Sequence record: MN018232.1
Reading direction: 5' to 3' (one strand)
DNA: 64,000 nt
The first letter of the stretch is position 1, and each line of letters opens with the position of its first letter. This document shows, one piece after another, positions 3,301 to 63,100 of the stretch. The notes under the pieces were generated by a model. That model did not search any database and was not told the origin of the DNA. It saw only the letters and a program-made list of their open reading frames with translations. The position numbers and the translations under genes were made by a program.

Positions 3301-4491
3301 ATTGATTTCAACTACTTCAACAACACCAGTTCCATTTGCAATGATATCCTTTACGATATCAATCATTGTATTAATAGAAGATTCAACTTCGGCACAATAT
3401 GGAGATACAGAATCTGCAATGACATTAGAGTCTGTAAATGGCGGAATTGCTGTATAAGTTCCCACTCCAAGAGAATTTCTCATAGCAAGAACCATTTTTT
3501 CTGCAAGTTTATTCCAAGCATCAATAGCAGCAGTTGTCTCCTCTGGAGTTCTATTGATGTAAGTTAATTCTTCACCATATGGATAACCAGTGTTAGTATA
3601 GTAAAGTTGTGCGAAATTAACAACTTTTTCATTGCCACCAAATCTTAAGTGATAAACAACAGCATCAATTAAATAACCAAGGTCTCTGTAACACTTTGTT
3701 TTATCCCCCTGTGGGAGGTTATAAGTGGCATAGATGTACTCACTAATTTCTTCTTGTAGATATTCTTTATTCGAATTGATTAAGTTAGAAGCATCATAAT
3801 ATGTTCCATTATTAATACCACTCAAATAGAAAGTTGCAACGTCAGATCCAGAGAAAGATACAGGAGCTATTAATTCGTCTCCTGGTTGAACGGAAAATGT
3901 GTTTCCTGGTGCAACAGAACCAGTGTTTGTAGGTAGAATGTAATTTCCATTGGTTGTTCCGTTCAAATCGGTATTACCAGCAGATGCTCCACCTCCACCA
4001 CCAGAGTTTGCAAGTGCAGCAGATGATAGTGTAACTTCAGTAGCACTGTCAATAGAAACAATCCTAGTTCCTTCATTAAAAGCTCTACCAGAACTAATAT
4101 ACATTCCAACTGCTAACCTATTTGTATCGGTGACAGTAACCGTTCTTGATCCTTGAATATAATTTACATTCTCTTCTACGATATCCCAGTTTCTAATTGC
4201 AAGTTTTGCTAGATTTGTAGCATACTTAAAAATTCCCAAAGACTCGGACTTATTCTTTGTGATATAATCATATTCATCATTATTGTCAAAAATATTGACG
4301 TAATCGACTGTCTTAGTATTTCCACCAAATCTCAAATCGTGCTCATAAGCATCGAGAATGAATCCAATGTCTTTAGAGTAGTCATCAAGTTTGGTGCTCC
4401 AATCCAAAGAAGGATATTTAAACTTACCATATCCAACAGATTCTTCCACAATGAAAGTTTTGTTTCTTTCAATTTGATTTGCAGAATCCAA
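319..4491 (-). CDS. gp7: Baseplate wedge initiator gp7, C-terminal portion (continuation of 7238..13718)
   Basis: Its first 121 codons duplicate the end of the 7238 ORF; GSGY repeats; lies immediately upstream of gp8. Confidence 0.8.
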   Translation of the reverse strand: MDSANQIERNKTFIVEESVGYGKFKYPSLDWSTKLDDYSKDIGFILDAYEHDLRFGGNTKTVDYVNIFDNNDEYDYITKNKSESLGIFKYATNLAKLAIRNWDIVEENVNYIQGSRTVTVTDTNRLAVGMYISSGRAFNEGTRIVSIDSATEVTLSSAALANSGGGGGASAGNTDLNGTTNGNYILPTNTGSVAPGNTFSVQPGDELIAPVSFSGSDVATFYLSGINNGTYYDASNLINSNKEYLQEEISEYIYATYNLPQGDKTKCYRDLGYLIDAVVYHLRFGGNEKVVNFAQLYYTNTGYPYGEELTYINRTPEETTAAIDAWNKLAEKMVLAMRNSLGVGTYTAIPPFTDSNVIADSVSPYCAEVESSINTMIDIVKDIIANGTGVVEVVEINENKSGFWSNTPTYSNYNIIPDPLLISQECDDVVSSVDSLYDNFESVLNNQVVTKTRPDYVDGENTIFDLYWEDGTEVNTEEDEDLFLTINAVLQRPKYTATYPQEDAYYIDRTVIPNRVVFDVAPIWDQDFGAKTIGEPTAVEKVVGIGVGNYKRLTIDYNLVDGVRSGPFLILDVEDYTVQNIEDSRYLYVFLDGVLQREQYSYTVSGPNIYFNVPIKKEMKIDIRYLYGRDVGQILNVFDFAPDNFYAKGNVSLEVTSGLSNFINYSWMGQYIGSPIHALQIKPDNTYNIIGQISNAFVSGSTLNFEIFGQKSELINGLDVVFAVSGRYNISSVISFDHSASSITYQVDDQGRLVLSDNNQIWAGTSLGKTYKQPFVSLSNNDLIRLEGEEGFRRIKKLPSLTTSKEQRVQQQVSNSLFGTVDVERYNGITRGEGLSVVAKIENGAVVDLEWNQRSYDPLTQPTAYQYYTPPVLHFIPQDGNGGGAIANVLVSKGQVISVDLIDGGSGYTEAPKVVVSRRYDVLSERDIGVSLINVGINPFLETTGMNAFSSISVLGNQVSGINTFTSILFNSPVDSDRVITAEIQLVEQNTELSIADREFSSTTSANLDDVPVIDVFHDATVLSAQVQDIVSVNSISTVSRAITTTFENLIHNDALSNVNYYAVGAYLDIDLDATDTIVYIPDTAKFKTNGYLLIGNEVVRYYRKLSDRFIMVQRGQDNTTPQFWTAGTFIRQVPDLVSSVFGGVATIQSEVGVVSVKGGIEVGTAERETKRQIVSPINTLSESTTELLRIPPPSGAVDGYEESIYISDPILTRLNGFVDLDDSYGVVKRNGDVVFVTNSLFGDSGEYIGNYERTNAGPTIGSFNSIFDDGTANVSAMTLLEMEFHYPALTIRDFTERAKSSYTLSGSYFNLTNPSIQNPVTVSFVTGSIGTSLTVQDTTYFPSSGYLFTSGGTVIEYTSKTSNSFGGCSVIRGSSNISVADEIVPFDLT

Positions 4492-4492
4492 C
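4128..4492. repeat. 365-bp inverted duplicate of 13354..13718 (contig overlap)
   Basis: Identical translation LDSANQIERNK...GSRTVTVT in both copies; both ends traced at base level, interior spot-checked. Confidence 0.9.
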
Positions 4493-4495
4493 AGA
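4485..4495. other. Breakpoint J1 (contig join)
   Basis: Identity to gp7 ends at 4492; an unrelated + strand gene fragment begins. Confidence 0.85.
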
Positions 4496-4820
4496 TGTTA
4501 TAGATAATAATGTAAGTGAAGTGCCCCAAGAGCACAAATCGCATAATTGTGTCGCTTTAGAGAATGGGCAGTTTGGATTGTACCCCAACAACAGGATGCG
4601 TTTGTATGACCTCTCTATCACTCCTGAGACGCCATTAACTCCTGATTTTAAAGTATCTACCGTGGAATATCAAGTTGAGAACGGAACCGATTGGGGACGC
4701 CTTGGAGATACTGATGATTATTTCTGGCAGACACCTAAAGAAAGGGATAGCAACCCCGTTAAAAGTTCTGATCAAACTTTTCTAACGGAGAAAAACGATG
4801 GGACTATTTCCAGTAGATAA
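4493..4820 (+). CDS. C-terminal half of a conserved cyanophage hypothetical protein (N-terminal half at 13719..14092, minus strand)
   Basis: DVIDNNVSEVPQEHKSHNCVALENGQFGLYPNNRMRLYD...PDFKVST recognised as the continuation of the EVWVRKEYL...FTLDN family. Confidence 0.7.
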
Positions 4821-5013
4821 AAGTGAAGAATTTATCGAAGAGGGTATGACACTGATTACCGAAACGGACAGTGACCGCCTCCTAGATGCCGCTGCAAAGC
4901 GTCGTAGAGCAAAGATGAAGGAAGAACTATACCCACTTCCTGAAGACCGCATGGAACGCCCATGTGGAGGAGCAGGTGGTTTTGATGATTTCGTAGAGCG
5001 TTGGCACGAGTGA
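4798..5013 (+). CDS. Conserved cyanophage hypothetical protein upstream of gp25
   Basis: 71-aa ORF (EFIEEGMTLITETDSDRLLD) followed by a late promoter. Confidence 0.6.
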   Translation: MGLFPVDKSEEFIEEGMTLITETDSDRLLDAAAKRRRAKMKEELYPLPEDRMERPCGGAGGFDDFVERWHE

Positions 5014-5020
5014 ATAAATA
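5014..5020 (+). promoter_or_regulatory. Late promoter ATAAATA for gp25-gp6-gp7
   Basis: gaATAAATAg about 25 nt before the gp25 ATG. Confidence 0.7.
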
Positions 5021-5044
5021 GAAACAGCCTATTGCTGTGTCTAA

Positions 5045-5437
5045 ATGCCGACCTTTCAGACATTCAAAGATCTGAGTGTTACTTTTAAGAAGCATCCTGT
5101 TTCCGACGATTTGGTAACAGTAAAAGACAAGGCAGCTATCGTTCAGGCGATTACTGCCTTGCTTCTTACTAGAAAGGGAGAAAGACCATTCCAACCTCAG
5201 TTAGGTTGTGGAATTCAGAATGTATTGTTCGAACCATTAGATTATGGTAGTGCTGGTATCATCCGATCCGAGATTAGAGATGTACTAAACCGCTATGAAC
5301 CAAGAATTAGTGTTGATAGTATCCGCTGCACACCAGATGATATGAATAATGGTTATGAAGTTGAGATGTCGTATACGATTGTAGGTAGAGACGACGCACC
5401 AGTAGCAGTAGAATTCTTCTTAGAGCGTACACGATAA
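5045..5437 (+). CDS. gp25: Baseplate wedge subunit gp25
   Basis: LLLTRKGERPFQPQLGC...LFEP...NRYEPRI, gp25/GPW motif. Confidence 0.9.
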   Translation: MPTFQTFKDLSVTFKKHPVSDDLVTVKDKAAIVQAITALLLTRKGERPFQPQLGCGIQNVLFEPLDYGSAGIIRSEIRDVLNRYEPRISVDSIRCTPDDMNNGYEVEMSYTIVGRDDAPVAVEFFLERTR

Positions 5438-7233
5438 TGCCTTATACTCAGGTTGCCAATCTAGACTTTGAAGACATCAAAATTGCTCTAAAGGATTATC
5501 TTAGGGCACAGTCGGATTTTACTGACTATGATTTTGATGGTAGTGCGTTATCAACGCTAATTGATACTCTCGCTTATAACACCTATTACACGGCGTTTAA
5601 CACCAATATGGTGGTCAATGAACTATTCATTGATTCAGCGACCTTGAGAGACAACGTAGTAGCGATTGCGAAGCAATTAGGATACAGACCCAAGAGTGCT
5701 ACGTCTCCAACAGCATATATCTCATTTACTGTTGATTACAGAAATCCCACGACCGATACAGAACTCATCCTTAAGAAAGGAACGGGATTCATTGCTTCTT
5801 ACGACAACAACATCTATCAGTATGTTGTATTAGATGATGTAACAGCGCAAGTAGCAAATCAACAAGCAATTTTCACTGATGTTGCCATTAGAGAGGGAAC
5901 ACAATTAGTAAACACATTCACAGTAAACACTGCTCTCAAGTCTCAAAGATTTGTATTAGACAATAGAGACATTGATACAAATACTATTAGAGTAAGAGTT
6001 TTCCCAACAGGTGGATCGTTCAACGAACCATATTTGGTTGCAGATAACATTTTGGGTGTTGACGGTGACTCAAAAATCTTCTTCTTGGAAGAAATCGAAG
6101 ATGAAAGATATGAGTTATTGTTTGGTGATGGTGTATTAGGCAAGAAACTTGAAAATGGATCTAGAGTCGAAGTATCTTACCTAACAACATCTGGTCCAGA
6201 ATCAAATGGAGTTAGAACTTTTGTATTCTCTGGAGTCATTGAAAATCCAGATGGTGTATCACCAAATGGTTTTGATGTTACCATTAACTCTACGGTCGCT
6301 TCAAGCGGCGGGGAGGAGGTAGAAACTACCAATACGATAAAGTACAACGCTCCTAAAGCATACGGCACACAGGACCGTGCAGTGACCGCTCAGGACTACT
6401 CTTCAATTGTTCGTAGAGTATATCCTTCGGTAAGTGATATTATTATCTTTGGTGGAGAGGATCAGGACCCACCACAGTATGGAAAGGTATTCATTGCTCT
6501 CAAACCAAAAGATGCTTCATACCTGACATCACTCACAAAGAATGAAATTGTAACAGAACTCAAGAAATATGTTGTTGCTTCTGTAGAACCTGTCTTAATT
6601 GATCCATCTATTCTCTATGTTGAGATGAATAGTAAGATTTACTACGATAGACAAGCAACGGATCAGACTCCTGCACAAATTAGGGACAAAGTTATTGGTT
6701 CTGTCCAAGATTATCTCGATACTTCCAACACAGAGAAGTTTAACGGGAAGTTCAGATACAGTAAAATGGTTGGTGTTATTGACGATGCTGATAGAAGCAT
6801 TAACTCTAACTTAACTTCTGTAACAATGAGGAAAGATTTTTACCCTCAGTTGAATTCAACTTTCTATTATGAGATCTGTTTTCAGAACGCTTTTGATGTT
6901 GAGTGTGACGAATCTATCCTTTCTACGACTGGATTTAGAGTAACCGAATATCCTACTTTTGATGTCTATTTGGAAGATAGGGATGGCAAAATTGTCCTAT
7001 ATAGACTAGACACTGTAACTGGTGAAAAAGTCGTCCTGGACAAGGAAGTTGGTGATATTGATTATGAAAAAGGTGAATTGAGAATGTACAATTTAACTAT
7101 CATTAAAGGTAGTTTCTTTGATAACCGTATATCAGTTAGAGTAAAACCACTATCAAACGATATTAAGGCACTCCGCGAGGTTTATCTTGATGTTGATGTG
7201 GCAAATTCCAGTTTCGTCGCGTACAAAGAGTAA
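5437..7233 (+). CDS. gp6: Baseplate wedge subunit gp6
   Basis: NLDFEDIK...FTDYDFDGS...AYNTYY and QDRAVTAQDY motifs. Confidence 0.92.
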   Translation: MPYTQVANLDFEDIKIALKDYLRAQSDFTDYDFDGSALSTLIDTLAYNTYYTAFNTNMVVNELFIDSATLRDNVVAIAKQLGYRPKSATSPTAYISFTVDYRNPTTDTELILKKGTGFIASYDNNIYQYVVLDDVTAQVANQQAIFTDVAIREGTQLVNTFTVNTALKSQRFVLDNRDIDTNTIRVRVFPTGGSFNEPYLVADNILGVDGDSKIFFLEEIEDERYELLFGDGVLGKKLENGSRVEVSYLTTSGPESNGVRTFVFSGVIENPDGVSPNGFDVTINSTVASSGGEEVETTNTIKYNAPKAYGTQDRAVTAQDYSSIVRRVYPSVSDIIIFGGEDQDPPQYGKVFIALKPKDASYLTSLTKNEIVTELKKYVVASVEPVLIDPSILYVEMNSKIYYDRQATDQTPAQIRDKVIGSVQDYLDTSNTEKFNGKFRYSKMVGVIDDADRSINSNLTSVTMRKDFYPQLNSTFYYEICFQNAFDVECDESILSTTGFRVTEYPTFDVYLEDRDGKIVLYRLDTVTGEKVVLDKEVGDIDYEKGELRMYNLTIIKGSFFDNRISVRVKPLSNDIKALREVYLDVDVANSSFVAYKE

Positions 7234-7237
7234 TTAA

Positions 7238-10200
7238 ATGGCTGTCAAGACCAAGAGAATCTCTACTCTTATTGAGTCACAACTTCCCGAGTTTATCTCT
7301 ACAGAGTACGAACTTTTTAGTAAGTTTGTACAGAAGTATTATGAAGCTCAAGAGGTTCAGGGCGGTCCTTTGGATATTCTTTCCAATATCCAAAAGTATG
7401 CGGACATTGACTACTACGAAAAGAATTTACTTAAGCAGAATGATCAACTAGCAGTATCAGTATCGGATTCTGATACTACGATCACTCTAAATGATGCCAG
7501 TTCATTCCCAGAAAAGAATGGATATGTAAGAATTGGCAACGAAATTATTTTTTATGCTACAAGAACAGACACTCAGTTGTTGGAGTGTTCTAGAGGTGTC
7601 AGTGGAAACACAACACTGGGAGACTTGTATGATGCATCCAAATTCTCCACCACAGAATCTGCCTCTCATGTGTCAGGTGAGAAAGTTTACAATGTAAGCA
7701 ATCTCTTCTTGTATGCATTTGTAAAAAACTTTGAGAACCAGTATTTGGGTTCATTCCCTGAAAAATACCTCAAAGGTGATGTTGACAAGAGAACTCTGAT
7801 TAAAAATATTCAGAAGTTCTATAAAGCAAAGGGAACTGATAGTTCAATCAAATTTGTCTTTAACACTATTGTCGCTAAAGACATCAACAACAAACCTTCT
7901 GTATATAAACCAAGAGACTTTACATATAAGTCTTCGGAAGCAGATTGGATTTCTGTTTATGCACTTAAGGTAAAAATTGTATCTGGAGATCCAAAGTCTC
8001 TGATTGGTCAGAAAGTTGTACAAACTTCTACCGATGAGTATGACTATGCATCAGCAACAGTAGACAACGTATATCAAGATGGAACTTCCGATGGAGAAGT
8101 TATCTGGAATATTGTTCTAGCTCCAGAAACTGTAAATGGCGAGTTTGCTGTTTCAACTAAGACTAGACTAGAAAAAGACTTACTAGATTCTTCTGGGGAA
8201 GGAAGCAGAGTAAATGTATTCTCAACTATTGGTTGGGGATCAACTGGTCAAGTTCTAATTGACCAAGAACTCATTTCGTTTGAAGATAAGAATGTAACTC
8301 AATTTGTAATTAGCGACAGAGGTGCAGTTCCTGTTCTACACGAAGCAGGTTCTTCAGTTTACAAACCAGTAATCATTTCAGGATCTGGTGCGTCACTACT
8401 AACATTAGGTGTTGTATACAATCTAGCACCTTCCGATTCTCACCCATACGCATCTGTTGGTGATAAAATCCAAGTATCTGATCCTGGTTTTAAAACTGCT
8501 GATCCTAGAATTACACTTCCTGGTACAAATCAGTCTAGATGGGTTTTAGGATCTGGTGCTTCTGTAAATATTCCAACTATTCCAGCCCTACAAACTTCTT
8601 TGAATGAAGTTTCGACTAATGTATCTGCTATTTTCGAAGATGAGCAATATTATTATATCACTGGTTCTAGTTATCCATCATACAAGATTCTTGATGGTTC
8701 ATCTGTAAATCAGGAACTAAAGGATCAAAAACTTTTAAGATTGCTCAGAAAGCGTCCAACTGTAACAACTGAGGTATACCAAACTCCAAAAAGGGATGTT
8801 GGAATTCTTGTAAATGGCGTTCCCATCTATGGTTATAAAGATGAAGAAAGCATCAGGTTTGGTAAACTAGTAGAAATCAAAGTTGATACTCAAGGAAGAG
8901 GATATGCAAAACCTCCCTTTGTACTATTAGATGGTGTACCAAACAAAGCAAGAGCAGTATTGTCTGGTCAGGTAGTTGAAAGTATTGTTGTAGAAACTAC
9001 TAGCATTTTCCCAAGAACACCAGAAGTGACAATTACTTCTGGTAGAAGAGCAGAAGTTCGTGCTATTGTTACTGGTGGAAAAGTAACAAGTCTTGTTATT
9101 GACAACCCTGGTGAATTTTATTCATCACCTCCAGTTGTTCGTATTCGTGATAATGCTGGAAGAGGTAGATTTGCTGAGTATAATGCCATTGTTGATACAG
9201 ATGGCAAGATCACTGGATTTGATAAAGTAGAAGAAGGAAACTTTTATACTCAAGATAGTGTAATTGTTGACATTATCCCAGTAGGACAAGGTGCATCTGG
9301 CATCGCTCTACTCAAAGAGTGGAACAAAAATAGATTCACAAAATTAAATTCTACTCTTGATACAAACTATGGTTATGTTTTTAGAAATTACAATAATGTC
9401 TTAGAGTATGGATATGCACATGTTGCAAATCCAAAGGCACTTAGAGTTTCTCTAGGTGATAACTTAAACTCTGCTGATACAGAACCAGCAAACAAAACAC
9501 ACTCACCAATCCTTGGATTTGCTTACGATGGTAATCCAATCTATGGTCCGTTTGCTCATCAGAATCCACTAGATCCACAATCTCCTATTGTTAGGATGAC
9601 ATCTAGTTATTCTTTGAATGGTTCTCGTCAAGACGGTCCATCACTGTCACAATATCCACTAGGATCATTTGTAAATGATTACACTTATAAGCATAAGAGT
9701 GGATCTTTGGATCAGAATAATGGAAGATATTGTGTAACACCAGATTTCCCAGAAGGAACATATGCATATTTCTTGACTATCAATAGTAGTCAGGTTCCTC
9801 AGTTTCCATATTTTGTTGGTGAGAACTTCTACTCCCTTCCAGTTGATAGTAACTATAATTCAAACATTAATCAAAACGACATTCCAAAAACTGCTAGAAG
9901 ATTCTTTATTCCTGGTATGCCAAGGAATGGAGAAGGTGTAATTGCTTCCATTTCAGAAGTTCAGTCTGGAACAGTAGATAATGTATCAGTAAACTCTTCC
10001 TCAAACAACTTCTCAGTAAACTCTAGTGTTTACTTTGATAATCAAGGAACTGGTGGATCTGAAGTAGAAGCAATTATCGAGTCGGTCAAAGGTAAGCAAG
10101 TTGATTATCTTGTCAGTAAAGAAAATAAAGTTGTAAAACTAACAACTATTCAAACAGCATATTTGTTTGCTGATGATACTTTAAGGCAACCATCATCAAG

Positions 10201-53114: not shown

Positions 53115-53122
53115 TTATATAC
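53105..53122. other. Breakpoint J8 (probable contig join)
   Basis: The protein switches after PTPKTKEWL to a Ser/Thr-rich fibre-like tail. Confidence 0.6.
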
Positions 53123-53459: not shown

Positions 53460-53497
53460 AGGTAACTGATAAATACACATAAACCACTTATAGGATG

Positions 53498-53656: not shown

Positions 53657-53657
53657 A

Positions 53658-54206
53658 ATGACACAACCTCTTACAAACCAGATATCTGATAGAAACTTTC
53701 TACAGGCTACTGGGTTTAGTTTCACTGTCAACAGGGCACCTAAACTTGGGTTCTTTGGTAATGCAATCAATGTACCTGGTCTTGTCATGGGAACTTTGGT
53801 ACAACCAAGTTATACAAGACAAATTCCAAGACCTGGTGATATCTTAGAATTCAATGACTTAAGAATTCGTTTCTTGATTGACGCAGGTCTTGAGAATTAT
53901 ATGGAGATACAAACCTGGTTAAGAGGTATTGGTTTCCCTGAAAGTCTTGATGAGATTTATGCATTCCAAAAGACTGGTCCCGTCAAACAGACACCCAACA
54001 GCGAGATTAACTTGTTCTCTGATGGAACCCTCACTATCCTGAACGGTATCAATAGACCAGTATTTGCGGTCAAGTTTAAGGACTTATTTCCTACCACATT
54101 GTCAGACATTCAGTTTGACGCAACAGGAACTGATGTAGAATACTTGACAGCTGATGTCACCTTCAAGTATTCTAACTATACTATAGAAGCATTTGAGTGT
54201 TGCTAA
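53658..54206 (+). CDS. gp3: Tail completion / sheath stabiliser gp3
   Basis: RNFL...F.F...P....F....N.PG...PGD.L.F..L...FL.D..LENY.EI..W. Confidence 0.85.
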   Translation: MTQPLTNQISDRNFLQATGFSFTVNRAPKLGFFGNAINVPGLVMGTLVQPSYTRQIPRPGDILEFNDLRIRFLIDAGLENYMEIQTWLRGIGFPESLDEIYAFQKTGPVKQTPNSEINLFSDGTLTILNGINRPVFAVKFKDLFPTTLSDIQFDATGTDVEYLTADVTFKYSNYTIEAFECC

Positions 54207-54641
54207 ATGATTGACCTACCTACACTTCAACAGATGTGGGAAAAGGATTCTAAAATTGACATTGACAACTTACATACCGAGTCTCTGAACATTCCAGTTC
54301 TGCACTCAAAATATTATGACATTTATAATAACCTCATGTTGTTGAGGAAGAAAGCAGAACAACAAAAAAAGAATGTAAGGCACGAAAGATATGAGTACTA
54401 TTCGGGTAAAGCAGACCCTGATGTTTATGTCAAAGATCCGTTTCCCAAAAAGATCCGAGATAAAGACACTATGCAAAAATATTTGGACGCTGATGAGAGA
54501 CTCTCAGGAATTTCGTTGAAGTGTGAGTATTACGAAGTGATGTTGAGATATATAGAAGAGATTCTAAAAATGCTGCACCAAAGAAACTATCAAATCAAAA
54601 ACAGTATTGAGTTCATGAGATTTAGTTCAGGGTTAGGTTAA
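54207..54641 (+). CDS. uvsY: Recombination mediator UvsY
   Basis: MWEKDSKID...LH.ESL.IP.LHSKY...YYSGKA...RNYQIKNSIEF. Confidence 0.88.
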   Translation: MIDLPTLQQMWEKDSKIDIDNLHTESLNIPVLHSKYYDIYNNLMLLRKKAEQQKKNVRHERYEYYSGKADPDVYVKDPFPKKIRDKDTMQKYLDADERLSGISLKCEYYEVMLRYIEEILKMLHQRNYQIKNSIEFMRFSSGLG

Positions 54642-54826
54642 TGGAAGAAGAAAGACCTTATGTAGAATTAGATTTAGATATTGAAGATGTCTATCTTATC
54701 TACAACTCTGTGAAGTTTCATTATGAGAAATGGCCTGGTGGTCATCCTGATGAACAAGCAAGATTAAATTTTATGAAAGACTTTCTATATCGGATTGTTT
54801 TACAATATAAGTTTGAAAATATGTAA
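54641..54826 (+). CDS. Hypothetical protein
   Basis: KWPGGHPDEQ motif; between uvsY and uvsW. Confidence 0.65.
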   Translation: MEEERPYVELDLDIEDVYLIYNSVKFHYEKWPGGHPDEQARLNFMKDFLYRIVLQYKFENM

Positions 54827-54855
54827 TAAATACTTGTAGGTGAGAACCTACATGT

Positions 54856-56322
54856 ATGGCTGATTTGACTATAGAAAAGGTAAACGAAGTTTACCTAAAG
54901 ATTACGACAGAACCACACATCGAGTATGAACTGAGAGATAGGTTCACCTTTGAGGTTCCAAATAAAAAATTCATGCCACAGTATCGGAGTAAGTACTGGG
55001 ATGGATTTGTTCATCTATTCAACATGAAGACCAAGAGAATCTATGTGGGTCTTCTTGATAAGATTATTGCATTCTGTGAGAGTGCAGGATATACGTATAA
55101 GTTTTTAAATAATAAATTCTACGGTCCACCATTTGAAGTGAATGACTTTGTAAGTCAAGGTGGTACTAAAGATTATATGGAAAGTATATCACCTGGTATC
55201 AGTCCCCGTGACTATCAGGTAGAAGGTGTATACGAAGCATTAAGGTATAACAGAAAACTACTCATCTCTCCTACGGGTTCTGGCAAATCTTTTATGATTT
55301 ACTCTGTAGTGAGATATCACGTTGCACGTGGTAATAAGATTCTACTGGTTGTTCCTACCACATCTCTTGTAGAACAGATGTTCAAGGACTTCCAACAATA
55401 TGGTTGGGATGCAGAGAATCATTGTCACAGAATTTATGCTGGACGTGAGAGAGTCAATACAAATGAGGTAACCATTACCACTTGGCAATCTGTCTATCAG
55501 TTGGATCGTAAGTTCTTTGAGGAGTATGATGTAGTCATTGGTGACGAGGCCCACCTTTTTAAGAGTAAGTCTCTTATTGGCATTATGGACAAGTTACATC
55601 ATGCTAAGTATAGATACGGGTTTACGGGGACACTAGACGGCTCTCAGACCCATAAATGGGTGTTAGAGGGACTCTTTGGTCCATCATATAAAGTCACTCA
55701 AACAAAGAAACTACAAGAGGAAGGACACCTTGCTGAACTTGATATTCAGTGTCTTGTTCTGAAGTATAGACCTAAGAAGTTTGATACCTATGAAGATGAG
55801 ATTCAATATCTGATATCACATGAGAAGAGGAATAATTTTATTACAAATCTAGTCAAAGATTTAGATGGCAATAGTCTGGTGTTGTATTCCAGAGTGGAGG
55901 CTCATGGTGCCATCTTATTTGACTTAATAAATAAAAAGGTAAGTGAAGACCGTAAAGTATTTTTTATTCATGGTGGTGTAGATGCCGAGGATAGAGAACA
56001 AGTAAGGGAGATTACTGAAAAAGAAAAAGACGCTATCATCGTCGCATCTTACGGAACATTCAGTACTGGTATTAATATTAAGAACCTTCATAACGTAATA
56101 TTTGCCTCTCCATCAAAATCTAGAGTAAGAAACTTACAAAGTATTGGTAGAGTCCTACGTAAAGGCAAAGATAAGGTTAGTGCAAAACTTTATGATATTG
56201 CAGATGACTTTACTATTGGATCAAGAAAGAATTACACATTGAATCACTTTATTGAGCGTGTAAAAATTTATGTTTCAGAACAGTTCAATTACGACATTTA
56301 TACTATTGACATAAAAGACTAG
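54856..56322 (+). CDS. uvsW: DNA helicase UvsW
   Basis: PRDYQ, SPTGSGKS, GDEAH, GFTGTL, QSIGRVLR. Confidence 0.95.
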   Translation: MADLTIEKVNEVYLKITTEPHIEYELRDRFTFEVPNKKFMPQYRSKYWDGFVHLFNMKTKRIYVGLLDKIIAFCESAGYTYKFLNNKFYGPPFEVNDFVSQGGTKDYMESISPGISPRDYQVEGVYEALRYNRKLLISPTGSGKSFMIYSVVRYHVARGNKILLVVPTTSLVEQMFKDFQQYGWDAENHCHRIYAGRERVNTNEVTITTWQSVYQLDRKFFEEYDVVIGDEAHLFKSKSLIGIMDKLHHAKYRYGFTGTLDGSQTHKWVLEGLFGPSYKVTQTKKLQEEGHLAELDIQCLVLKYRPKKFDTYEDEIQYLISHEKRNNFITNLVKDLDGNSLVLYSRVEAHGAILFDLINKKVSEDRKVFFIHGGVDAEDREQVREITEKEKDAIIVASYGTFSTGINIKNLHNVIFASPSKSRVRNLQSIGRVLRKGKDKVSAKLYDIADDFTIGSRKNYTLNHFIERVKIYVSEQFNYDIYTIDIKD

Positions 56323-56336
56323 AAAAAGGAGATTGT

Positions 56337-56723
56337 ATGATAGAGGATGATTTTTACGCAACAATCAAACTCAAATGTGGTGATGAAATCTTTTGTAAGG
56401 TAGCAGCATCTGATGAAGATGATAGAACTATGCTTCTCATCTCTCATCCTATTTGTGTTCAACCAATTAAAACAAGAGGTTCAATTACTGGTTACAAGTT
56501 TGAACCATGGTTAAAGACTTCGCATGAAGATCTATTTGTAATTAATCTAGAAGATGTTCTCACAATGTCTGAATCAGAGAACATTGAAATGATTATGAAC
56601 TATCAAGACTACATTAGAAAAACAAACCAAGGTAACTTTGCTAAGTTAGATAGAAGAATGGGTTACTTAGGAAATGTAAGAGATACGAAAGAAGTCTTGG
56701 AGAAGCTTTATAAGTCCTCTTAG
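56337..56723 (+). CDS. Conserved cyanophage protein between uvsW and gp55
   Basis: FYATIKLKCGDEIF.KV...FEPW.K. Confidence 0.7.
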   Translation: MIEDDFYATIKLKCGDEIFCKVAASDEDDRTMLLISHPICVQPIKTRGSITGYKFEPWLKTSHEDLFVINLEDVLTMSESENIEMIMNYQDYIRKTNQGNFAKLDRRMGYLGNVRDTKEVLEKLYKSS

Positions 56724-56782
56724 TAGTACCTATAACTTATCTATCATCCTGGACAAGCCTAGTCTATATGGCTTTTGATACC

Positions 56783-56811
56783 TTGTCAACACTTGATATC
56801 TCTGATATAAT
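56783..56811 (+). promoter_or_regulatory. Sigma70-type promoter TTGTCA-N17-TATAAT for gp55
   Basis: Lies inside the ORF-track N-terminal extension, supporting a start at 56834. Confidence 0.65.
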
Positions 56812-56833
56812 AAAGACAACAAAAAGAACCATT

Positions 56834-57313
56834 ATGCCTAAACCCAGAAATGCAGAACACTATGTAAATAACAAGGAGTTTCTGAACGCACTTGAGAACT
56901 ACTTTGCACGAGTGGAGAAAGCAAAACTCAATGATCAACCCAAACCAGAAATTCCTCGTTACATTGGTGAGTGCTTTCTGAAGATTGCAAATCACTTGTC
57001 ATACAAACCAAACTTTGTCAATTACATGTTCAAAGATGACATGATTTGTGATGGTATTGAGAACTGTGTGAGATATATTCATAACTTTAATCCTGAGAAG
57101 TCAAAGAACCCCTTTGCATACTTTACTCAGATCATCTACTATGCATTCCTGAGAAGGATCTCTCAAGAGAAGAAACAGTTAGAGATCAAGAACAAGATCC
57201 TAGAAAGAACTGACTTCGATGAAGTCTTTGATGCCAACGACCTTGACATTGGTAACTACTCTGATTATAATTCGATTAAAGATGCAGTGCATCAGAAACT
57301 GAGAAATTCATGA
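56834..57313 (+). CDS. gp55: Late transcription sigma factor gp55
   Basis: HYVNNKEFL...YIGECFLKIANHLSYKPNFVNY...NPFAYFTQI. Confidence 0.93.
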   Translation: MPKPRNAEHYVNNKEFLNALENYFARVEKAKLNDQPKPEIPRYIGECFLKIANHLSYKPNFVNYMFKDDMICDGIENCVRYIHNFNPEKSKNPFAYFTQIIYYAFLRRISQEKKQLEIKNKILERTDFDEVFDANDLDIGNYSDYNSIKDAVHQKLRNS

Positions 57314-57627
57314 TTGGAAAACTGGATCCAGAAGAACGCGTTATGTACAACCCTTTGAGAGTGAAAGCTCAAATACTGGAAGCAATCAATACCCTTGGTT
57401 GGGATGAACTTGACGAGATTAGTGTAGAGATTGGTGGAACAGCTGTCTCTGGTATTGATGTTGGTGAAGAGTACAATAAAAAGTGGCAATCACCTATTGG
57501 TACTCGTAAGTACAACAAAGATGCATTCATTGTCATCAAGAACCAAGGTCGTAGAGATCTGACTAAATCCCAACCCATGGAAGAGTTTAACCCTAGACAT
57601 CCACATGAAAGTAGCAATAATAACTGA
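57310..57627 (+). CDS. Conserved cyanophage hypothetical protein
   Basis: KWQSPIGTRKYNKDAFIVIKN; between gp55 and gp47. Confidence 0.7.
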   Translation: MIGKLDPEERVMYNPLRVKAQILEAINTLGWDELDEISVEIGGTAVSGIDVGEEYNKKWQSPIGTRKYNKDAFIVIKNQGRRDLTKSQPMEEFNPRHPHESSNNN

Positions 57628-58192
57628 TACTCACTACGGTGCTCGTAAAGGTTCTAAACTCTTTCACGATTACTTTGAAAAGTTCTACAACGATGTCTTC
57701 TTTCCAACCATAGACAAAGAAGGTATTGATACTGTCATTCATATGGGTGATGCGTTTGATAGCCGAAAGGGTATTGAATTCAAATCACTGAAGTGGGCAA
57801 AGAGAGTTGTGTTCAATCCTCTCAAGGAACGTGGTATCAAGATGCATCTGATGGTTGGTAATCATGATGCATACTACAAGAACACAAATGAAATCAATGC
57901 TGTTGATCTTCTACTGAAAGAATATGATAATGTTGAGGTTTATTCTTCTCCTACAGAAGTATCTGTGGGTGATCTACCCATTCTATTCCTTCCTTGGATC
58001 AACGAACAAAACGAAAAGGAAACCAACAACATTATCAAGAAGACAAAGTGTCCAGTCGCAATGGGACACCTCGAACTTAACGGGTTTGTCGCAACCCCTG
58101 GCCACATCATGGAGCACGGTCACGACGCAAGAGCCTTTAATAAGTTCAGGAAAGTCTTTTCGGGACATTATCACTCTCGATCCGACAATGGG
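57605..58192 (+). CDS. gp47: Recombination nuclease gp47 (Mre11/SbcD-like), cut at J9
   Basis: ITDTHYG, GDAFD, GNHD, GHLE, SGHYH. Confidence 0.9.
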
Positions 58193-58200
58193 ACCCAAGC
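58186..58200. other. Breakpoint J9 (contig join)
   Basis: gp47 stops about two-thirds of the way through and the strand switches. Confidence 0.85.
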
Positions 58201-58230
58201 ATGAGTAGAAAATAAGGGTGTAATTATTTA

Positions 58231-58359
58231 TTATACACCCTCATATACTGGTTGCATTAAACCACTATCGGGACCATTATCATCATCGTCTACATCATCT
58301 GTAAACAACACAGAATAGAAGATGAAGGTCCCTAACAGGATGGAACCTATTAATAACAT
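58231..58359 (-). CDS. Small membrane peptide with acidic tail (42 aa)
   Basis: MLLIGSILLGTFIFYSVLFTDDVDDDDNGPDSGLMQPV. Confidence 0.6.
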   Translation of the reverse strand: MLLIGSILLGTFIFYSVLFTDDVDDDDNGPDSGLMQPVYEGV

Positions 58360-58364
58360 ATCGT

Positions 58365-58472
58365 TCACCAGATGCCAGGAATGATTTGACCTGTGGTTGC
58401 GTATGCACCCATGGCTGCCATGACACCAATCATTGCTGCCCAACCATTAATACGTTCTGCTCTTTCGTTCAT
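58365..58472 (-). CDS. hli: High-light-inducible protein (35 aa, not in ORF track)
   Basis: MNERAERINGWAAMIGVMAAMGAYATTGQIIPGIW (AExxNGxxAMxG). Confidence 0.9.
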   Translation of the reverse strand: MNERAERINGWAAMIGVMAAMGAYATTGQIIPGIW

Positions 58473-58618
58473 TGTTTTTCCTCTTGTGTCTTGTTTGTAA
58501 TGATGATCTTTTGACCATCGTGGGTAAATTGTAACTCATCATCTGGATCCCACAGTAACTCTTCATACAAATCATCGAGTTTCTGCATATCAATGTAGAG
58601 TTGATCTGGATTAGGCAT
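58469..58618 (-). CDS. Small acidic hypothetical protein (49 aa, not in ORF track)
   Basis: MPNPDQLYIDMQKLDDLYEELLWDPDDELQFTHDG. Confidence 0.6.
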   Translation of the reverse strand: MPNPDQLYIDMQKLDDLYEELLWDPDDELQFTHDGQKIIITNKTQEEKQ

Positions 58619-58900
58619 ACTTATCAAACATTTTACGAATATTTTGAGTAATACCCATACCCCCAGTAAACTCTTCTAGTTTGTTTCCTTCCCCATCAAC
58701 AATGACAAGAACAGGAGTTGCAGTCACACCATACTGCTTTGCAAGATCAAGATTCTCTTGTGGGATAGGTACATCACTTACGTCTTCAAGGTCAACCTTT
58801 TCAAGAAGACTGGTACGTTCATCTTTAATGGAACGCATGTATTTGTCCACTAACATACATGGACCACACGAATCTTTTGAAAAGAGATAGAACTTGTTTG
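58611..58900 (-). CDS. Thioredoxin/glutaredoxin-like protein (start uncertain)
   Basis: FSKDSCGPC, YGVTATPVLV. Confidence 0.8.
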
Positions 58901-59194
58901 TCACAAATTTTCCTCCTGCTCTGAGAGAATTACACAATCACTAGTCGGATATGCGACACAGGTCAGAATGTATCCCTCTTCAATTTGGTCATCATCCAGG
59001 AAGGATTGTTCTTCGTTGTCCACAGTTCCACTGATGATCTTACCAGCACATGCAGAACATGCACCAGCCTTACATGAGTAAGGAAGGTCTACACCTGCCT
59101 CTTCACCAGCCTCTAAAATGTACTGATCATCAGCACACTCAAACTTTGACTCGGTTCCATCAGGGGATTGGATAGTGATGCTGTAAATTGCCAT
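58901..59194 (-). CDS. petF: Plant-type [2Fe-2S] ferredoxin
   Basis: [13 protein letters not shown]...QSFLDDDQ...LTCVAYP. Confidence 0.95.
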
Positions 59195-59280
59195 TAGTAA
59201 GTCTCAGATAGTTTTTCTACAGAATACGCCAACAATACAAAGAAGGCGATACTCGTTAGTGTAAAGAGTGTTGAAGTCAT
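59194..59280 (-). CDS. 28-aa single-helix membrane peptide (not in ORF track)
   Basis: [28 protein letters not shown]; TAATG coupling to petF. Confidence 0.55.
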
Positions 59281-59282
59281 TG

Positions 59283-59492
59283 TCAACCTTTAAGTGTGAG
59301 ATAAAACTTGGTTTCATCACCTGGAGTATTCTCGTAGATGGATGAGTCACCATATGTTTTGTGGTCTTTGTATCCTACCATACGACCTTTAGTGTTCTGA
59401 AGTGCAGGCATAAAGGCGATGAGAAAGAATACGGCAGGTGCTCCGATGATAAGAGCACCAGAAATCACATAATAAGTAATAAGTTCAGCCAT
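59283..59492 (-). CDS. Small membrane protein
   Basis: One hydrophobic helix, then PALQNTKGRMVGY. Confidence 0.6.
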   Translation of the reverse strand: MAELITYYVISGALIIGAPAVFFLIAFMPALQNTKGRMVGYKDHKTYGDSSIYENTPGDETKFYLTLKG

Positions 59493-59710
59493 CAGAATCC
59501 AAATGCTCCGAAGAAGAACACACTACCAGTCGTTGCATAAGAAACAACTGCTGCAACAAAACCAAGCATTGCTACACGTCCATTCAACTTCTCTGCTTTC
59601 TCAGCATGAGTTTCGATACCATAACGGTCAAGGTCTTCCTTGGTCATGTACATTGCTGGTTCAGTAGCCCACATATTTTGTTGGCCACGATCATTAGTAG
59701 TAACAGTCAC
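59492..59710 (-). CDS. hli: High-light-inducible protein
   Basis: AEKLNGRVAMLGF. Confidence 0.92.
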   Translation of the reverse strand: MTVTTNDRGQQNMWATEPAMYMTKEDLDRYGIETHAEKAEKLNGRVAMLGFVAAVVSYATTGSVFFFGAFGF

Positions 59711-59738
59711 GGATCTCTCCTGTGTGAAGTATTGTTAC

Positions 59739-59768
59739 ATTATATATGTTTTCTTAATATTCTGTCAA
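59739..59768 (-). promoter_or_regulatory. Sigma70-type promoter TTGACA-N18-TATAAT for the hli-petF operon
   Basis: tgtcaa 59763-59768 and attata 59739-59744 on + strand. Confidence 0.7.
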
Positions 59769-59770
59769 GT

Positions 59771-59795
59771 AAAAAGGACAGTCTCTCGACTGTCC
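59771..59795 (-). terminator. Intrinsic terminator after pstS
   Basis: GGACAGTC-GAGA-GACTGTCC-TTTTT on the minus strand. Confidence 0.85.
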
Positions 59796-59809
59796 CTGTG
59801 TTCATATGA

Positions 59810-60778
59810 TCACTTAAGTGTTTCTACAACACCTAAAGCTCGTTGTCGAAGTTCCTCTGGGAGAGGGACATAACCAAGAGAATCTGAAAGAGCTTGTGAC
59901 TCTTCACTCAACATAAAACGAAGGGTGGTCTTCACTGCTTCATTATTATCTGCCTCAGGATACGCTAGGATCCAAGTAAGGGAGACAATAGGGTATGCAT
60001 TGGCACCCCTAGGATTAGGATCAGCACCACGAAGCTGATCGTCAAGGATGATCTGTGATAAACCAGCTGCAGATGTTTCAGCATTTGCTTTAACATAGTT
60101 ACCATCTCTGTTTTGAAGAGAAACTTGTTGGAACTTTCCACCGTTTACATAACCATAGTTAAGATAACCAATCGAACCATCAATTTGTCTGATCTGTGCA
60201 GCTACACCAGAGTTACCTTTACCACCAACACCAACAGGCCACTTAACTGACTTACCAGTTCCTACACGTTCTGCCCATTCAGCAGAGAATGCAGACAGAG
60301 AGTTTGTGAAACCTTTGGTAGTACCAGAACCATCAGAGCGATGGACAGTCACGATCTTCTTATCAGCACAACCAAACTCAGACCAGTTGGTGATATTACC
60401 AAGGAAGACATCAGCAAGTTGTGCTTGAGTCATCTTGGCATCACAACCAGAATTGTTGTAAGCAGGAACAATTGCACCACCAGTCATGGGGATATGCACC
60501 ATGGGCAGTTTTTGTTTCTTATCACTTACAGCACCATCAGAGGCACCGAAGTCAACAGTCTTAGCAGTGAACTGACGGACACCAGCACCACTACCAACTG
60601 CCTGGTAGTTCACTTTGTTACCAGTCTTTTCTTGAAAATTTTGTAACCACGCAGTGTACAGAGGTGCAGGGAAAGTAGCACCAGCACCATTTAACTTGAA
60701 TGTAGTTTCTTTAGAACCACATGCGACAAGAGTGCCACCAACGGCGATGGCACTCAGAACTTTGAGAAAGTTTTTCAT
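59810..60778 (-). CDS. pstS: Phosphate-binding protein PstS
   Basis: Lipobox LVAC, GAGATFP, YQAVGSGAG, DFGASD, RSDGSGTT, YPIVSLTW. Confidence 0.95.
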   Translation of the reverse strand: MKNFLKVLSAIAVGGTLVACGSKETTFKLNGAGATFPAPLYTAWLQNFQEKTGNKVNYQAVGSGAGVRQFTAKTVDFGASDGAVSDKKQKLPMVHIPMTGGAIVPAYNNSGCDAKMTQAQLADVFLGNITNWSEFGCADKKIVTVHRSDGSGTTKGFTNSLSAFSAEWAERVGTGKSVKWPVGVGGKGNSGVAAQIRQIDGSIGYLNYGYVNGGKFQQVSLQNRDGNYVKANAETSAAGLSQIILDDQLRGADPNPRGANAYPIVSLTWILAYPEADNNEAVKTTLRFMLSEESQALSDSLGYVPLPEELRQRALGVVETLK

Positions 60779-60781
60779 TTA

Positions 60782-61141
60782 TCAGAACCTGTACTTAGTG
60801 CCCAGTTCAACTTTCCAATCACGGGTGTTGTCTTCCATGAAAAGATTTTCCCACTTTCCATATGCAGACAGACTATCTGTCAACTTTACTTTACCACCAA
60901 CTTCCAGAACGGTAAAGGTCTCACTCTCCTTTCCATCAGGAGAAATGATACCAGCACCACCCTCGATGTAAGGAGTGAAGGAACCAAACTTTTTATCAAC
61001 ACCAATACGAGCAGAATTTACAGACTTCGAAAAGTCCTCGTCAGTCCCTTTAAACTCATGCTTAGTTTCTACATAAGGACCAGCGAATGCAGGTGTCGCT
61101 ATTGCTGAGAGTGCCAGAGCGGCAAGTGCAATTGATTTCAT
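60782..61141 (-). CDS. Small outer-membrane beta-barrel protein (119 aa)
   Basis: Signal peptide ending AFA, GPYV start, alternating beta strands, C-terminal KYRF. Confidence 0.7.
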   Translation of the reverse strand: MKSIALAALALSAIATPAFAGPYVETKHEFKGTDEDFSKSVNSARIGVDKKFGSFTPYIEGGAGIISPDGKESETFTVLEVGGKVKLTDSLSAYGKWENLFMEDNTRDWKVELGTKYRF

Positions 61142-61170
61142 TTTTTTATTAAGGTAAATTACTTTGTCCG

Positions 61171-61276
61171 AAGACTCTAGTATTATAACAGAGTCTTTGT
61201 GGTTTGTATTTAAGATCAAGTTAAATTGATTTGAGAACAAACCTTGGTATATATACTGGCTTAATTTAAAATTAAC
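61171..61276 (-). promoter_or_regulatory. Promoter with TATAAT (61182-61187) and Pho-box-like TTAA repeats at 11-bp period
   Basis: TTTAACTT-N3-CTTAAATA (61225-61207) and GTTAATTT-N3-ATTAAGCC (61276-61258). Confidence 0.5.
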
Positions 61277-61279
61277 CAT

Positions 61280-61308
61280 AAAAAAACCCCCTCATAAAGA
61301 GGAGGTTT
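61280..61308 (-). terminator. Intrinsic terminator after the first barrel gene
   Basis: AAACCTCCTC-TTTAT-GAGGGGGTTT-TTTT on the minus strand. Confidence 0.75.
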
Positions 61309-61326
61309 GATTATCTGGTATTAGAA

Positions 61327-61701
61327 TCAGAAGCTGTACTTCAGACCCAGTTTACCACCAGCATTCAGGGCGTCAAAGTCGCCACCATCGGTAGTGGTTG
61401 CAGACAGTTCACCGTATGCACCCAACTTCGAAGACAGTGCAACAGAAGCACCAACCTTACCAGAGAACTCAGTCTCGGCTTCTTCACCGTCAAGGGAAAC
61501 GATGGAAGGACCGCCTTGGACATACCAAGCAGCATCTTCGCCCAGAGCACCTTCGTAGCCGACGTGCAGATCAGTTACTGCACCAGTGTAGTCATCACCG
61601 ACCCAACCAGCGTTGGTCTCAACGTTAACGTAAGGACCTGCAACAGCAGCGCCAGCGGACATAGACAGAGCAGCAGCAGCTGCGAATACAGATTTGAACA
61701 T
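61327..61701 (-). CDS. Small outer-membrane beta-barrel protein (124 aa), paralog of 60782..61141
   Basis: Signal peptide ending AVA, GPYV start, C-terminal KYSF. Confidence 0.7.
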   Translation of the reverse strand: MFKSVFAAAAALSMSAGAAVAGPYVNVETNAGWVGDDYTGAVTDLHVGYEGALGEDAAWYVQGGPSIVSLDGEEAETEFSGKVGASVALSSKLGAYGELSATTTDGGDFDALNAGGKLGLKYSF

Positions 61702-61814
61702 TAGTTTTACCTCGTTTTTACTTGTGGAATGGTTACCCACAGATGGAAAGGGAATCGACACTCCCTGTTTTATTACCAATTGTAACTTTAATTACTGAAA
61801 GACAAAAGGTGAAG

Positions 61815-61848
61815 TATTTATAGTAACAGACAACTGTAACTTTGTCAA
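61815..61848 (-). promoter_or_regulatory. Overlapping sigma70 promoter (TTGACA-N17-TACTAT) and perfect T4 late promoter TATAAATA
   Basis: tgtcaa 61843-61848, atagta 61820-61825, tatttata 61815-61822. Confidence 0.7.
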
Positions 61849-62645
61849 CCCTCTTGTGGGGGTTGTACGTTAGATGGATCGGATACCCGACCCAGATATG
61901 GATTGAAGTCCATTAACTCAGAGATTTCCATCTGAGCCCCAGTCTGTGACCAGAAGTTGAATTGAGCTTGATAGTTGCTCTTGTGGAATACCTCCACATG
62001 GTCCTGGTGAATACTGGAACCTAGATCGGTCTTGTATAACAAAAGGGGAATGGCGTAAGTGTTACCAGAATTGTAGATGAGATCATCTGCAACAGGTCTT
62101 GGTCTTACATCATTATCAAGTTTGTATTTGTCACCACGACAGTGAAGACGAATTAGTTTCTCTGCGTGATGACGAGTGATAATATAACATGCTGTAGAGA
62201 ATTCATTCACGAAACGTTTATGAATCTTGATGTTGATATCACCAGTACAGATGATTGAGATCTGAGTTACATCCCAATCATATGGAATCTTACTAAAGAA
62301 ATCCCTCCATGTAAAGTTCCAGAACCTGACCAGATCAAGTTCACAATCATCTTCCATCATGATTGCGTATGGTTCACCACTATCATAGAACTCTTTGATA
62401 GCCTTGAGGTGAGAGGTCACACAACCGATCTCACCTGGTGAACACATGTCAGGGTACCTACCCTTCAGAATGTGTCCCAGATCGTCTTCTCGACCGTCGT
62501 AAGCGGACACACGGGTATAGTTAGTGATCTCCCAGTACTTGAACTGGTCCTCCATGTACTTCCATCTCTCGGGTTGTCCATCGAGATTGATACAATAGAT
62601 CTTTGGAAGACCTTGAAGTTTGAATACGGCTTTGTTTCTATCCAT
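61845..62645 (-). CDS. Glycosyltransferase family 25 (LPS-type)
   Basis: YCINLD...ERW...VSAYDG...GEIGC..SHL..I...MEDD. Confidence 0.85.
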   Translation of the reverse strand: MDRNKAVFKLQGLPKIYCINLDGQPERWKYMEDQFKYWEITNYTRVSAYDGREDDLGHILKGRYPDMCSPGEIGCVTSHLKAIKEFYDSGEPYAIMMEDDCELDLVRFWNFTWRDFFSKIPYDWDVTQISIICTGDINIKIHKRFVNEFSTACYIITRHHAEKLIRLHCRGDKYKLDNDVRPRPVADDLIYNSGNTYAIPLLLYKTDLGSSIHQDHVEVFHKSNYQAQFNFWSQTGAQMEISELMDFNPYLGRVSDPSNVQPPQEG

Positions 62646-63094
62646 TACAGTATTTCCCAATGGTCAGGGTACAAATCTTTAGTGTCTAAGTGAGCATTGT
62701 TTGGTCCAAACCATTTGGAAGGAGCAATGACTCTACCACAGTTTGCCAACCATGCACCCCACCATGAGAATGTAGAGTTGGCAATGATAAAGTCACTACA
62801 CTGAGTCATCAGGTACAGATCATGATAGGAACTGTTACCCTCAGACAGAAGGAATCTATCTGGTTTGAATAGTTCTTGAGAAGCAGCCCAGAATGGGTCA
62901 TCAGTGAATAGAATTACTTCCCTGTCTGGGTCAAACTTACTCAAGGCTTTCTCGTACCATTCAAGAGAAAGGTTGTGGTGATTACCACTGTTGATCAGAA
63001 AGTCTCCCCTACGAATATGTAAAGCAATGGGACTTTGATCGAACACCTCATCAACGATAGGTTCAGACTCTCCTTGAATCGTAGAGTTGAACTT
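62645..63094 (-). CDS. Glycosyltransferase family 11 (alpha-1,2-fucosyltransferase-like), C-terminal part
   Basis: [27 protein letters not shown]. Confidence 0.85.
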
Positions 63095-63100
63095 TGCAAC
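63088..63100. other. Breakpoint J10 (contig join, in-frame by chance)
   Basis: D1 tail stops at ESTPVA; GT11 lacks its N-terminal half. Confidence 0.8.

Follow-up and report, generated by a model that had tools for sequence, protein, structure and literature searches.

Is the 64,000-bp stretch of sequence record MN018232.1 analyzed here (the window) a segment of a phage chromosome, or a series of contigs placed end to end? MN018232.1, a record of 213,993 bp labelled "complete genome", is the sequence of Synechococcus phage S-B43, whose host is Synechococcus sp. MW02. Its positions 124001–188000 agree with the window at 100% identity (megablast and letter-for-letter check), and a window coordinate is the MN018232.1 coordinate minus 124000. 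Our analysis confirmed that the abrupt breaks in gene content seen along the window are an artefact of assembly and deposition, not a biological feature. With a probability of about 97%, the window was taken from a deposited pseudo-molecule, in which approx. 24 assembler contigs derived from two phages were joined longest first, and it represents no real chromosome.

With few exceptions, the nucleotide matches of the window were to myoviruses of Synechococcus and Prochlorococcus. Its content includes a T4-like core (gp25, gp6, gp8, gp48, gp41, gp47, gp55, uvsW and uvsY, as identified by annotation and Pfam) as well as the cyanophage auxiliary genes psbA, hli, pstS and petF, which places this DNA within the Kyanoviridae. 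A tRNA scan of the 64-kb window found no tRNA genes.

Size-sorted blocks in the S-B43 record

The first sign of the breaks was that matches to close relatives start or stop exactly where an original prediction, made from the letters alone, had placed them. Phages S-B05 and RB11-B match the window from position 21189 onward, RB11-B matches 41137–47263 and 58195–63094, and S-B05 and RN05-S match 53459–58195. The prediction had listed ten breaks, at about 4492, 13718, 21188, 28278, 34890, 41138, 47256, 53114, 58192 and 63095; all of them exist, each at most 4 nt from the position given.

In order to define the blocks, the whole S-B43 record was compared by megablast with RB11-B (PV261925.1), and the comparison was repeated with S-B05 (MK799832.1). 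The record was found to consist of approx. 24 blocks (designated here by letters in their order along the record), which lie at 98–99.9% identity in scattered places and on both strands of RB11-B, and the same breakpoints were recovered against S-B05, over both strands of which the blocks are likewise scattered. The comparison of gene order with complete relatives, proposed together with the prediction, thus supported it. RB11-B (210,127 bp, host MW02) shows this degree of identity to blocks I, J (patchily), L, M, N, O and P, as well as to the greater part of the remaining S-B43 record. However, its genes are intact and colinear with the usual module order of T4-like cyanophages, which served as the yardstick, whereas S-B43 is composed of scattered, size-sorted pieces plus 35 kb of a foreign phage.

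The order of the blocks follows their length. The nine complete pieces of the window, predicted to decrease strictly in size, measure 9226, 7470, 7093, 6605, 6250, 6123, 5858, 5078 and approx. 4900 bp after refinement of their borders, and the rule extends to the whole record. The first six blocks have lengths of 55834, 18564, 16235, 13407, 12589 and 11863 bp, and the pieces of the window are followed by blocks of approx. 4704, 4041, 3802 and 3337 bp, of 3085 and 2897 bp, and of approx. 2503, 1820 and 710 bp. The lengths thus decrease strictly between 55,834 bp for the first block and approx. 710 bp for the last, which is one ordering in 24! (approx. 6 × 10^23).

Stretches of 1.4–4.7 kb that separate the blocks in RB11-B are absent from S-B43, which means that the record is also incomplete. 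Among the RB11-B sequences that fall in gaps between the blocks are uvsX/recA (RB11-B 84038–85045) and psbD (RB11-B 27468–28529).

A self-comparison of the record by BLAST revealed duplications situated exactly at the termini of non-adjacent blocks. The last 854 bp of block O (window 62241–63094) are the reverse complement of record positions 103187–104040, the end of block D (100% identity), and record positions 199641–199849 repeat positions 55626–55834 (209 bp, 100%). Blocks G and F end in the same 365 bp (13354–13718 and 4128–4492, respectively), in reverse-complementary orientation and again with 100% identity, so that the right end of G joins the right end of F, head to head, and not block H. 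In addition, BLAST showed that the first approx. 470 bp of block N (approx. 53118–53585) are the reverse complement of record positions 1–488, with 98.8% identity. These duplications are overlapping contig ends that were not merged, and the joins that they imply agree with the gene order of RB11-B and of phage S-WAM2.

Cut genes, fused genes and independent sequence at the junctions

At every junction, a gene is cut in the middle on at least one side, as had been predicted (Table 1). Among the individual block ends, only that on the left of block K (34887) is an exception and may be intergenic, the first gene of the block being annotated to start approx. 100 nt downstream. The breakpoints hit the essential genes gp41, gp48, gp47, gp7 and the DNA polymerase gene, which a natural rearrangement should have left intact.

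The prediction had also dismissed any gene fusion across a break as meaningless. This is best illustrated by the 444-aa open reading frame (ORF) at 62645–63979 (minus strand), in which Pfam recognized Photo_RC (residues 12–261) followed by part of Glyco_transf_11 (residues 318–423, corresponding to positions 166–278 of the 298-position profile), i.e. the C-terminal half of this domain. Another annotated ORF (38818–41334, plus strand) runs 198 nt from block K into block L. In the seam-crossing ORFs 52467–53459 and 38818–41334, in ORF 41112–43244 and in the purM fragments, Pfam detected no domain, and their chimeric or truncated state is deduced from alignments.

Chimeric or run-on ORFs crossing the seams, at 62645–64000 (minus), 52467–53459 (plus), 38818–41334 (plus) and 28203–29591 (minus), have been deposited as proteins. 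The deposited seam proteins include QDH50676.1, QDH50655.1, QDH50634.1 and QDH50627.1, and can mislead protein databases.

Table 1. Blocks, junctions and chimeric ORFs of the window (positions are window coordinates unless marked as record coordinates)
Feature	Position	Length	Counterpart	Content or effect on genes
Block F	record 116630–128492; its tail is window 1–4492	11,863 bp	second phage; no RB11-B match	minus strand: gp8-like baseplate wedge gene and C-terminal 1390 codons of gp7-like giant structural gene, cut at right end
Block G	4493–13718	9,226 bp	second phage	C-terminal part of purM, hypothetical gene, gp25, gp6, N-terminal 2160 codons of gp7-like gene (plus strand); both ends cut
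Block H	13719–21188	7,470 bp	second phage	N-terminal part of purM (minus, cut at left end), PAAR-motif ORF, many small hypothetical ORFs
Block I	21189–28281	7,093 bp	RB11-B 83641–76549 (minus), 99.6%	starts 137 codons into gp41 DnaB-like helicase gene; stops 19 codons before end of cytidyltransferase gene
Block J	28282–34886	6,605 bp	RB11-B 184265–190337 (plus), patchy identity of 86–99%	tail-fibre region; both end genes cut
Block K	34887–41136	6,250 bp	second phage	two virion structural proteins and start of giant tail-fibre gene
Block L	41137–47259	6,123 bp	RB11-B 10407–16534 (plus), 99.2%	starts inside 821-aa "endolysin" gene; ends inside gp48 (tail-tube cap)
Block M	47260–53117	5,858 bp	RB11-B 179541–173667 (minus)	both end genes cut
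Block N	53118–58195	5,078 bp	RB11-B approx. 105700–100217 (minus)	gp3, uvsY, uvsW, gp55; stops 150 codons before end of gp47
Block O	58196–63094	approx. 4,900 bp	RB11-B 39405–44304 (plus), 99.6%	hli, thioredoxin, ferredoxin, pstS, glycosyltransferases
Block P	record approx. 187095–191799; its start is window 63095–64000	approx. 4,704 bp	RB11-B 29174–33878 (plus)	begins 25 nt before end of psbA
Junction F/G	4492/3			cuts gp7-like gene (F side) and purM (G side)
Junction G/H	13718/9			cuts gp7-like gene (G side) and purM (H side)
Junction H/I	21188/9			gp41 helicase lacks first 137 codons; 312-aa ORF with DnaB_C only (Pfam), vs 457 aa in RB11-B and S-B05
Junction I/J	28281/2			last 19 codons of cytidyltransferase and last 13 codons of tail fiber-like protein missing
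Junction J/K	34886/7			LamG-like tail-fibre protein lacks first 282 codons (J side)
Junction K/L	41136/7			giant tail fibre cut at approx. codon 770 (S-WAM2 residue 683 of approx. 3,200); 821-aa "endolysin" lacks last 119 codons
Junction L/M	47259/60			gp48 ORF of 303 aa, of which 291 codons are real, vs 487–499 aa in five IMG/VR contigs
Junction M/N	53117/8			two genes fused into ORF 52467–53459
Junction N/O	58195/6			gp47 lacks last 150 codons; 199-aa ORF with Metallophos only (Pfam), vs 346 aa
Junction O/P	63094–63096			psbA fused to C-terminal half of family-11 glycosyltransferase gene
Chimeric ORF QDH50655.1	52467–53459 (plus)			N-terminal approx. 217 codons from "proteolytic enzyme" gene (M), C-terminal approx. 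114 codons from tail-fibre gene (N)
Chimeric ORF QDH50676.1	62645–63979 (minus)	465 aa as deposited		deposited as "photosystem II protein D1"; psbA without last 8 codons plus half of family-11 glycosyltransferase gene

Independent sequence was examined at four of the ten junctions (21188/9, 47259/60, 58195/6 and 63094/5), using metagenome contigs of the Logan collection for two of them and viral contigs of IMG/VR for the other two. Nothing was found to span these junctions; reads crossing them had been named as the observation that would contradict the prediction. None of the listed Logan contigs of four metagenomes (from four studies) that cover window positions 57601–63600 bridges 58195 or 63094/5. 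The metagenome contigs that fit the window at 99% or more stop matching exactly at these two points and continue with unlike letters. In run X5 the continuing letters are those of RB11-B on three of the four sides (0 mismatches in 30), and the fourth side is occupied by variant forms of the conserved psbA 3′ end.

Seven IMG/VR contigs contain the 30-letter start of block I, and in all seven the match to the window ends at 21189. From there these contigs follow RB11-B for a further 1.2–5.3 kb, past the remainder of gp41 into uvsX and, where they are longer, into gp43. A protein-guided search of IMG/VR provided the contigs for junction 47259/60; in two of them (L025 and L026) the match to the window ends at 47259/60, after which they take the course of RB11-B into gp53 and gp32. 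Taken together, nine of ten closely related IMG/VR contigs leave the window at a seam, and the tenth ends before reaching one. Scans of IMG/VR with exact 30-mers from the right end of block I, both ends of L and the right end of M gave no match, the relatives differing there by a few percent.

One candidate joint, linking position 59420 to 63096 in two metagenomes, was rejected: it is supported by only 36 letters on one side and was taken as a variant of the psbA flank or a repeat. Within block O, at the thioredoxin/ferredoxin boundary (58619–58907), 287 bp are replaced by 15 other letters in metagenomes X5 and X6, which is a natural indel variant among relatives.

Contigs of a second phage

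Four blocks (F, G, H and K) are without counterpart in RB11-B or S-B05. They occupy window positions 1–21188 and 34887–41136 and, outside the window, record positions 116630–124000 (approx. 35 kb altogether). Their nearest relatives are S-WAM2 (NC_031935.1; Cymopoleiavirus), S-RSM4 and ACG-2014e/i/j, with a nucleotide identity of only 71–82% and an amino-acid identity of 37–83%, depending on the gene, which by the usual 95% criterion makes them different species. Block K, for example, shows 71% identity to ACG-2014i/e, and S-WAM2 matches window positions 4798–13704 at 75.4%. The phage collection held no record at least 95% identical to these blocks other than S-B43 itself.

The gene order shared with the S-WAM2 type comprises small ORFs, purM, gp25, gp6, the gp7-like gene, gp8, a giant structural gene, virion structural genes and a giant tail-fibre gene. 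The four blocks form a single stretch syntenic with S-WAM2, in the arrangement reverse complement of H, then G, then reverse complement of F, a gap of approx. 2.8 kb, and K. Block H matches the minus strand of S-WAM2 at 50427–58466, immediately upstream of the S-WAM2 region matched by G. Alignment of S-WAM2 proteins revealed how genes are divided between the blocks. Residues 130–205 of PurM are encoded from window position 4497 (left end of G), and residues 7–122 on the minus strand up to position 13721 (left end of H). Residues 3–2162 of the gp7-like protein (3446 aa) align on G up to its last base (13717), and residues 2042–3445 align on the reverse complement of F, starting from the last base of F. 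This strand continues with gp8 and with a 2694-aa structural protein, of which only residues 1–1902 are present, down to the first base of F. In block K, the first approx. 770 codons of the giant tail-fibre gene correspond to residues 1–683 of approx. 3,200 in S-WAM2.

A complete RB11-B-like set of gp25, gp6, gp7, gp8 and the gene for a 2539-aa structural protein is present in block A (record 23982–50185, 99.4% identity to RB11-B), with the gp25–gp6–gp7–gp8 module at record 31607–50185. The module in F, G, H and K is therefore a second copy, divergent and truncated, which bears out the earlier suggestion that more than one phage may have contributed the pieces. Metagenomes lend weak support to this view: the best 24 runs for block G and the best 24 for blocks N, O and P had none in common. 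The metagenomes containing the second phage are labelled as seawater, aquaculture and freshwater.

These observations show that the contigs were derived from two phages: an RB11-B/S-B05-like T4-type cyanomyovirus (approx. 179 kb, incomplete) and an S-WAM2/S-RSM4-like cyanomyovirus (approx. 35 kb). The latter is likely to be a so far unsequenced species of the Kyanoviridae, co-propagated with S-B43 on Synechococcus sp. MW02, so that F, G, H and K would constitute a second, recoverable phage.

Part of block H (approx. 15000–19000) differs from the rest of the window in its GC content (0.46–0.52 vs approx. 0.37 elsewhere) and contains many short, overlapping ORFs on both strands; homologous small-ORF regions occur in S-RSM4 and S-WAM2. 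In the same block, ORF 14271–14660 (minus strand), annotated as "helicase", matches the PAAR motif family with 26.2 bits (Pfam cut-off, 27). Judging by this match, its product is more likely to be a spike-tip protein than a helicase.

Origin of the record, alternative explanations and consequences

The data presented above show that short reads of the S-B43 lysate were assembled no further than approx. 24 contigs, that the contig file, ordered from longest to shortest, was joined head to tail in arbitrary orientation and without spacers, and that an ORF caller then yielded truncated and fused genes at the seams. Assemblers write contig files from longest to shortest. In the proposed course of events, a mixed lysate of two phages would have yielded the contigs, which would then have been pasted longest first, annotated and deposited as a complete genome. 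The assembly may have broken at internal repeats of the gp7-like gene, as suggested by repeated internal matches in the alignment. It may also have broken where co-occurring strain variants differ, since some of the end overlaps are 100% identical and one only 98.8%. The original prediction had proposed a bin or single-virus assembly joined in size order; joining by size proved correct, but a metagenomic bin does not apply, as the record is a GenBank entry for a cultured isolate.

Concatenated draft contigs are a known kind of database artefact. S-B43 resembles other such pseudo-molecules in its longest-first contig order, the arbitrary orientation of the pieces and the chimeric ORFs at the seams. 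It differs from them in that their joins are usually marked by N letters, or the record is declared as a draft or whole-genome shotgun entry, whereas S-B43 has no spacers and is labelled as a complete genome.

Two points weigh against this explanation. Junctions 28281/2, 34886/7, 41136/7 and 53117/8 were assigned from comparison with RB11-B, S-B05 and S-WAM2, from truncated genes and, for 53117/8, from the terminal overlap, and exact 30-mer scans at three of them found no environmental contig. Moreover, F, G and H follow one another in the window as they do in the second phage, except that G is flipped, which could be read as a real inversion. We rejected such an inversion, which would destroy both gp7 and purM; the identical 365-bp overlap of F and G lies at the "wrong" ends and is typical of unmerged contigs. 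As a refinement of the original prediction, F, G and H are genuine neighbours that are separated by artificial seams all the same.

A genuine rearrangement of the S-B43 genome, i.e. natural inversions and translocations relative to RB11-B together with the acquisition of a second baseplate and tail-fibre module, would be in keeping with the mosaic structure that T4-like cyanophages show in hypervariable regions. In its favour are also the label of a complete genome and the good quality of the sequence itself, the blocks being 98–99.9% identical to relatives. Nevertheless, this explanation is extremely improbable. It would require approx. 24 blocks to have become strictly sorted by length and the essential genes gp41, gp48, gp47, gp7 and the DNA polymerase gene to have been cut. 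It would also have to accommodate uvsX/recA and psbD lying in the gaps between the blocks, identical duplications of 365–854 bp exactly at block termini, and the absence from environmental contigs of all four junctions examined.

It is also very unlikely that a single phage is involved, with only the order of its pieces being artefactual and the blocks lacking an RB11-B match representing its own hypervariable regions. Tail-fibre and baseplate genes are indeed the most variable parts of these genomes, and block J, with its patchy identity of 86–99%, is an example of such divergence. However, the RB11-B-like baseplate module is already present in full in block A, and F, G, H and K contain a divergent, truncated second copy arranged as one S-WAM2-like syntenic stretch, which moreover occurs in a set of metagenomes different from that of the remaining window sequence. 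As for circular permutation or terminal redundancy of a T4-like genome opened at different points, block C does span the ends of the linear RB11-B record, as permutation predicts. Between any two records this process accounts for no more than one breakpoint, which in this case lies inside a block, and it cannot generate approx. 23 seams, strand flips and size sorting; we therefore discard it. The concatenation of contigs from two phages is the explanation retained.

This matter concerns data quality and curation and has little bearing on biology, apart from its by-product, approx. 35 kb of an unsequenced cyanomyovirus. Both GenBank and INPHARED carry MN018232.1 as a complete Kyanoviridae genome of 214 kb, and a later review lists S-B43 as a 214-kb genome in a table. 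In the literature passages mentioning S-B43 that we could consult, which do not include the primary S-B43 paper (Virus Res 2020, 289:198155), none flags the record. The artefact is inherited by every value derived from the record: genome size, gene count, synteny, intergenomic similarity used in taxonomy, and the presence or absence of auxiliary metabolic genes. The baseplate module is counted twice, one of the copies being that of another phage, and uvsX and psbD would appear to be absent, though they merely lie between contigs. Chimeric proteins, such as the 465-aa "D1" with its glycosyltransferase tail, enter protein databases derived from GenBank, and any genome-scan signal that crosses a seam in this window is void.

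The S-B05 record (208,857 bp, same host) presents the same kind of problem, and other deposits of the same pipeline therefore deserve to be checked. According to a published reference list, S-B05 was deposited by an author group overlapping with that of S-B43. It is 93.8–99.9% identical to the same blocks (99.86% for block I), is likewise labelled "complete genome", is rearranged relative to RB11-B (approx. 11–12 blocks) and contains truncated and fused ORFs. In contrast to S-B43, its block boundaries lie elsewhere, its blocks are only roughly, not strictly, ordered by size, and no blocks of the second phage were seen in it. Among its broken ORFs are a DNA polymerase of 626 aa (vs 831 aa) and a 1070-aa "adenosylmethionine decarboxylase", and two annotated repeat_region features of 102 bp (40399–40500 and 158813–158914) are located at block ends.

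Pieces of the S-H68 record (MK016663.1, 79,639 bp) are 98–99% identical to blocks L and O; this record is probably a partial genome or another collection of contigs. In the RB11-B record, a 223-bp "tRNA-Leu" is annotated at the very end. Positions 80733–80870 of the S-B43 record (138 bp, block C) match both ends of RB11-B (1–138 and approx. 209987–210124), which suggests that a short terminal duplication was left in RB11-B from circularisation.

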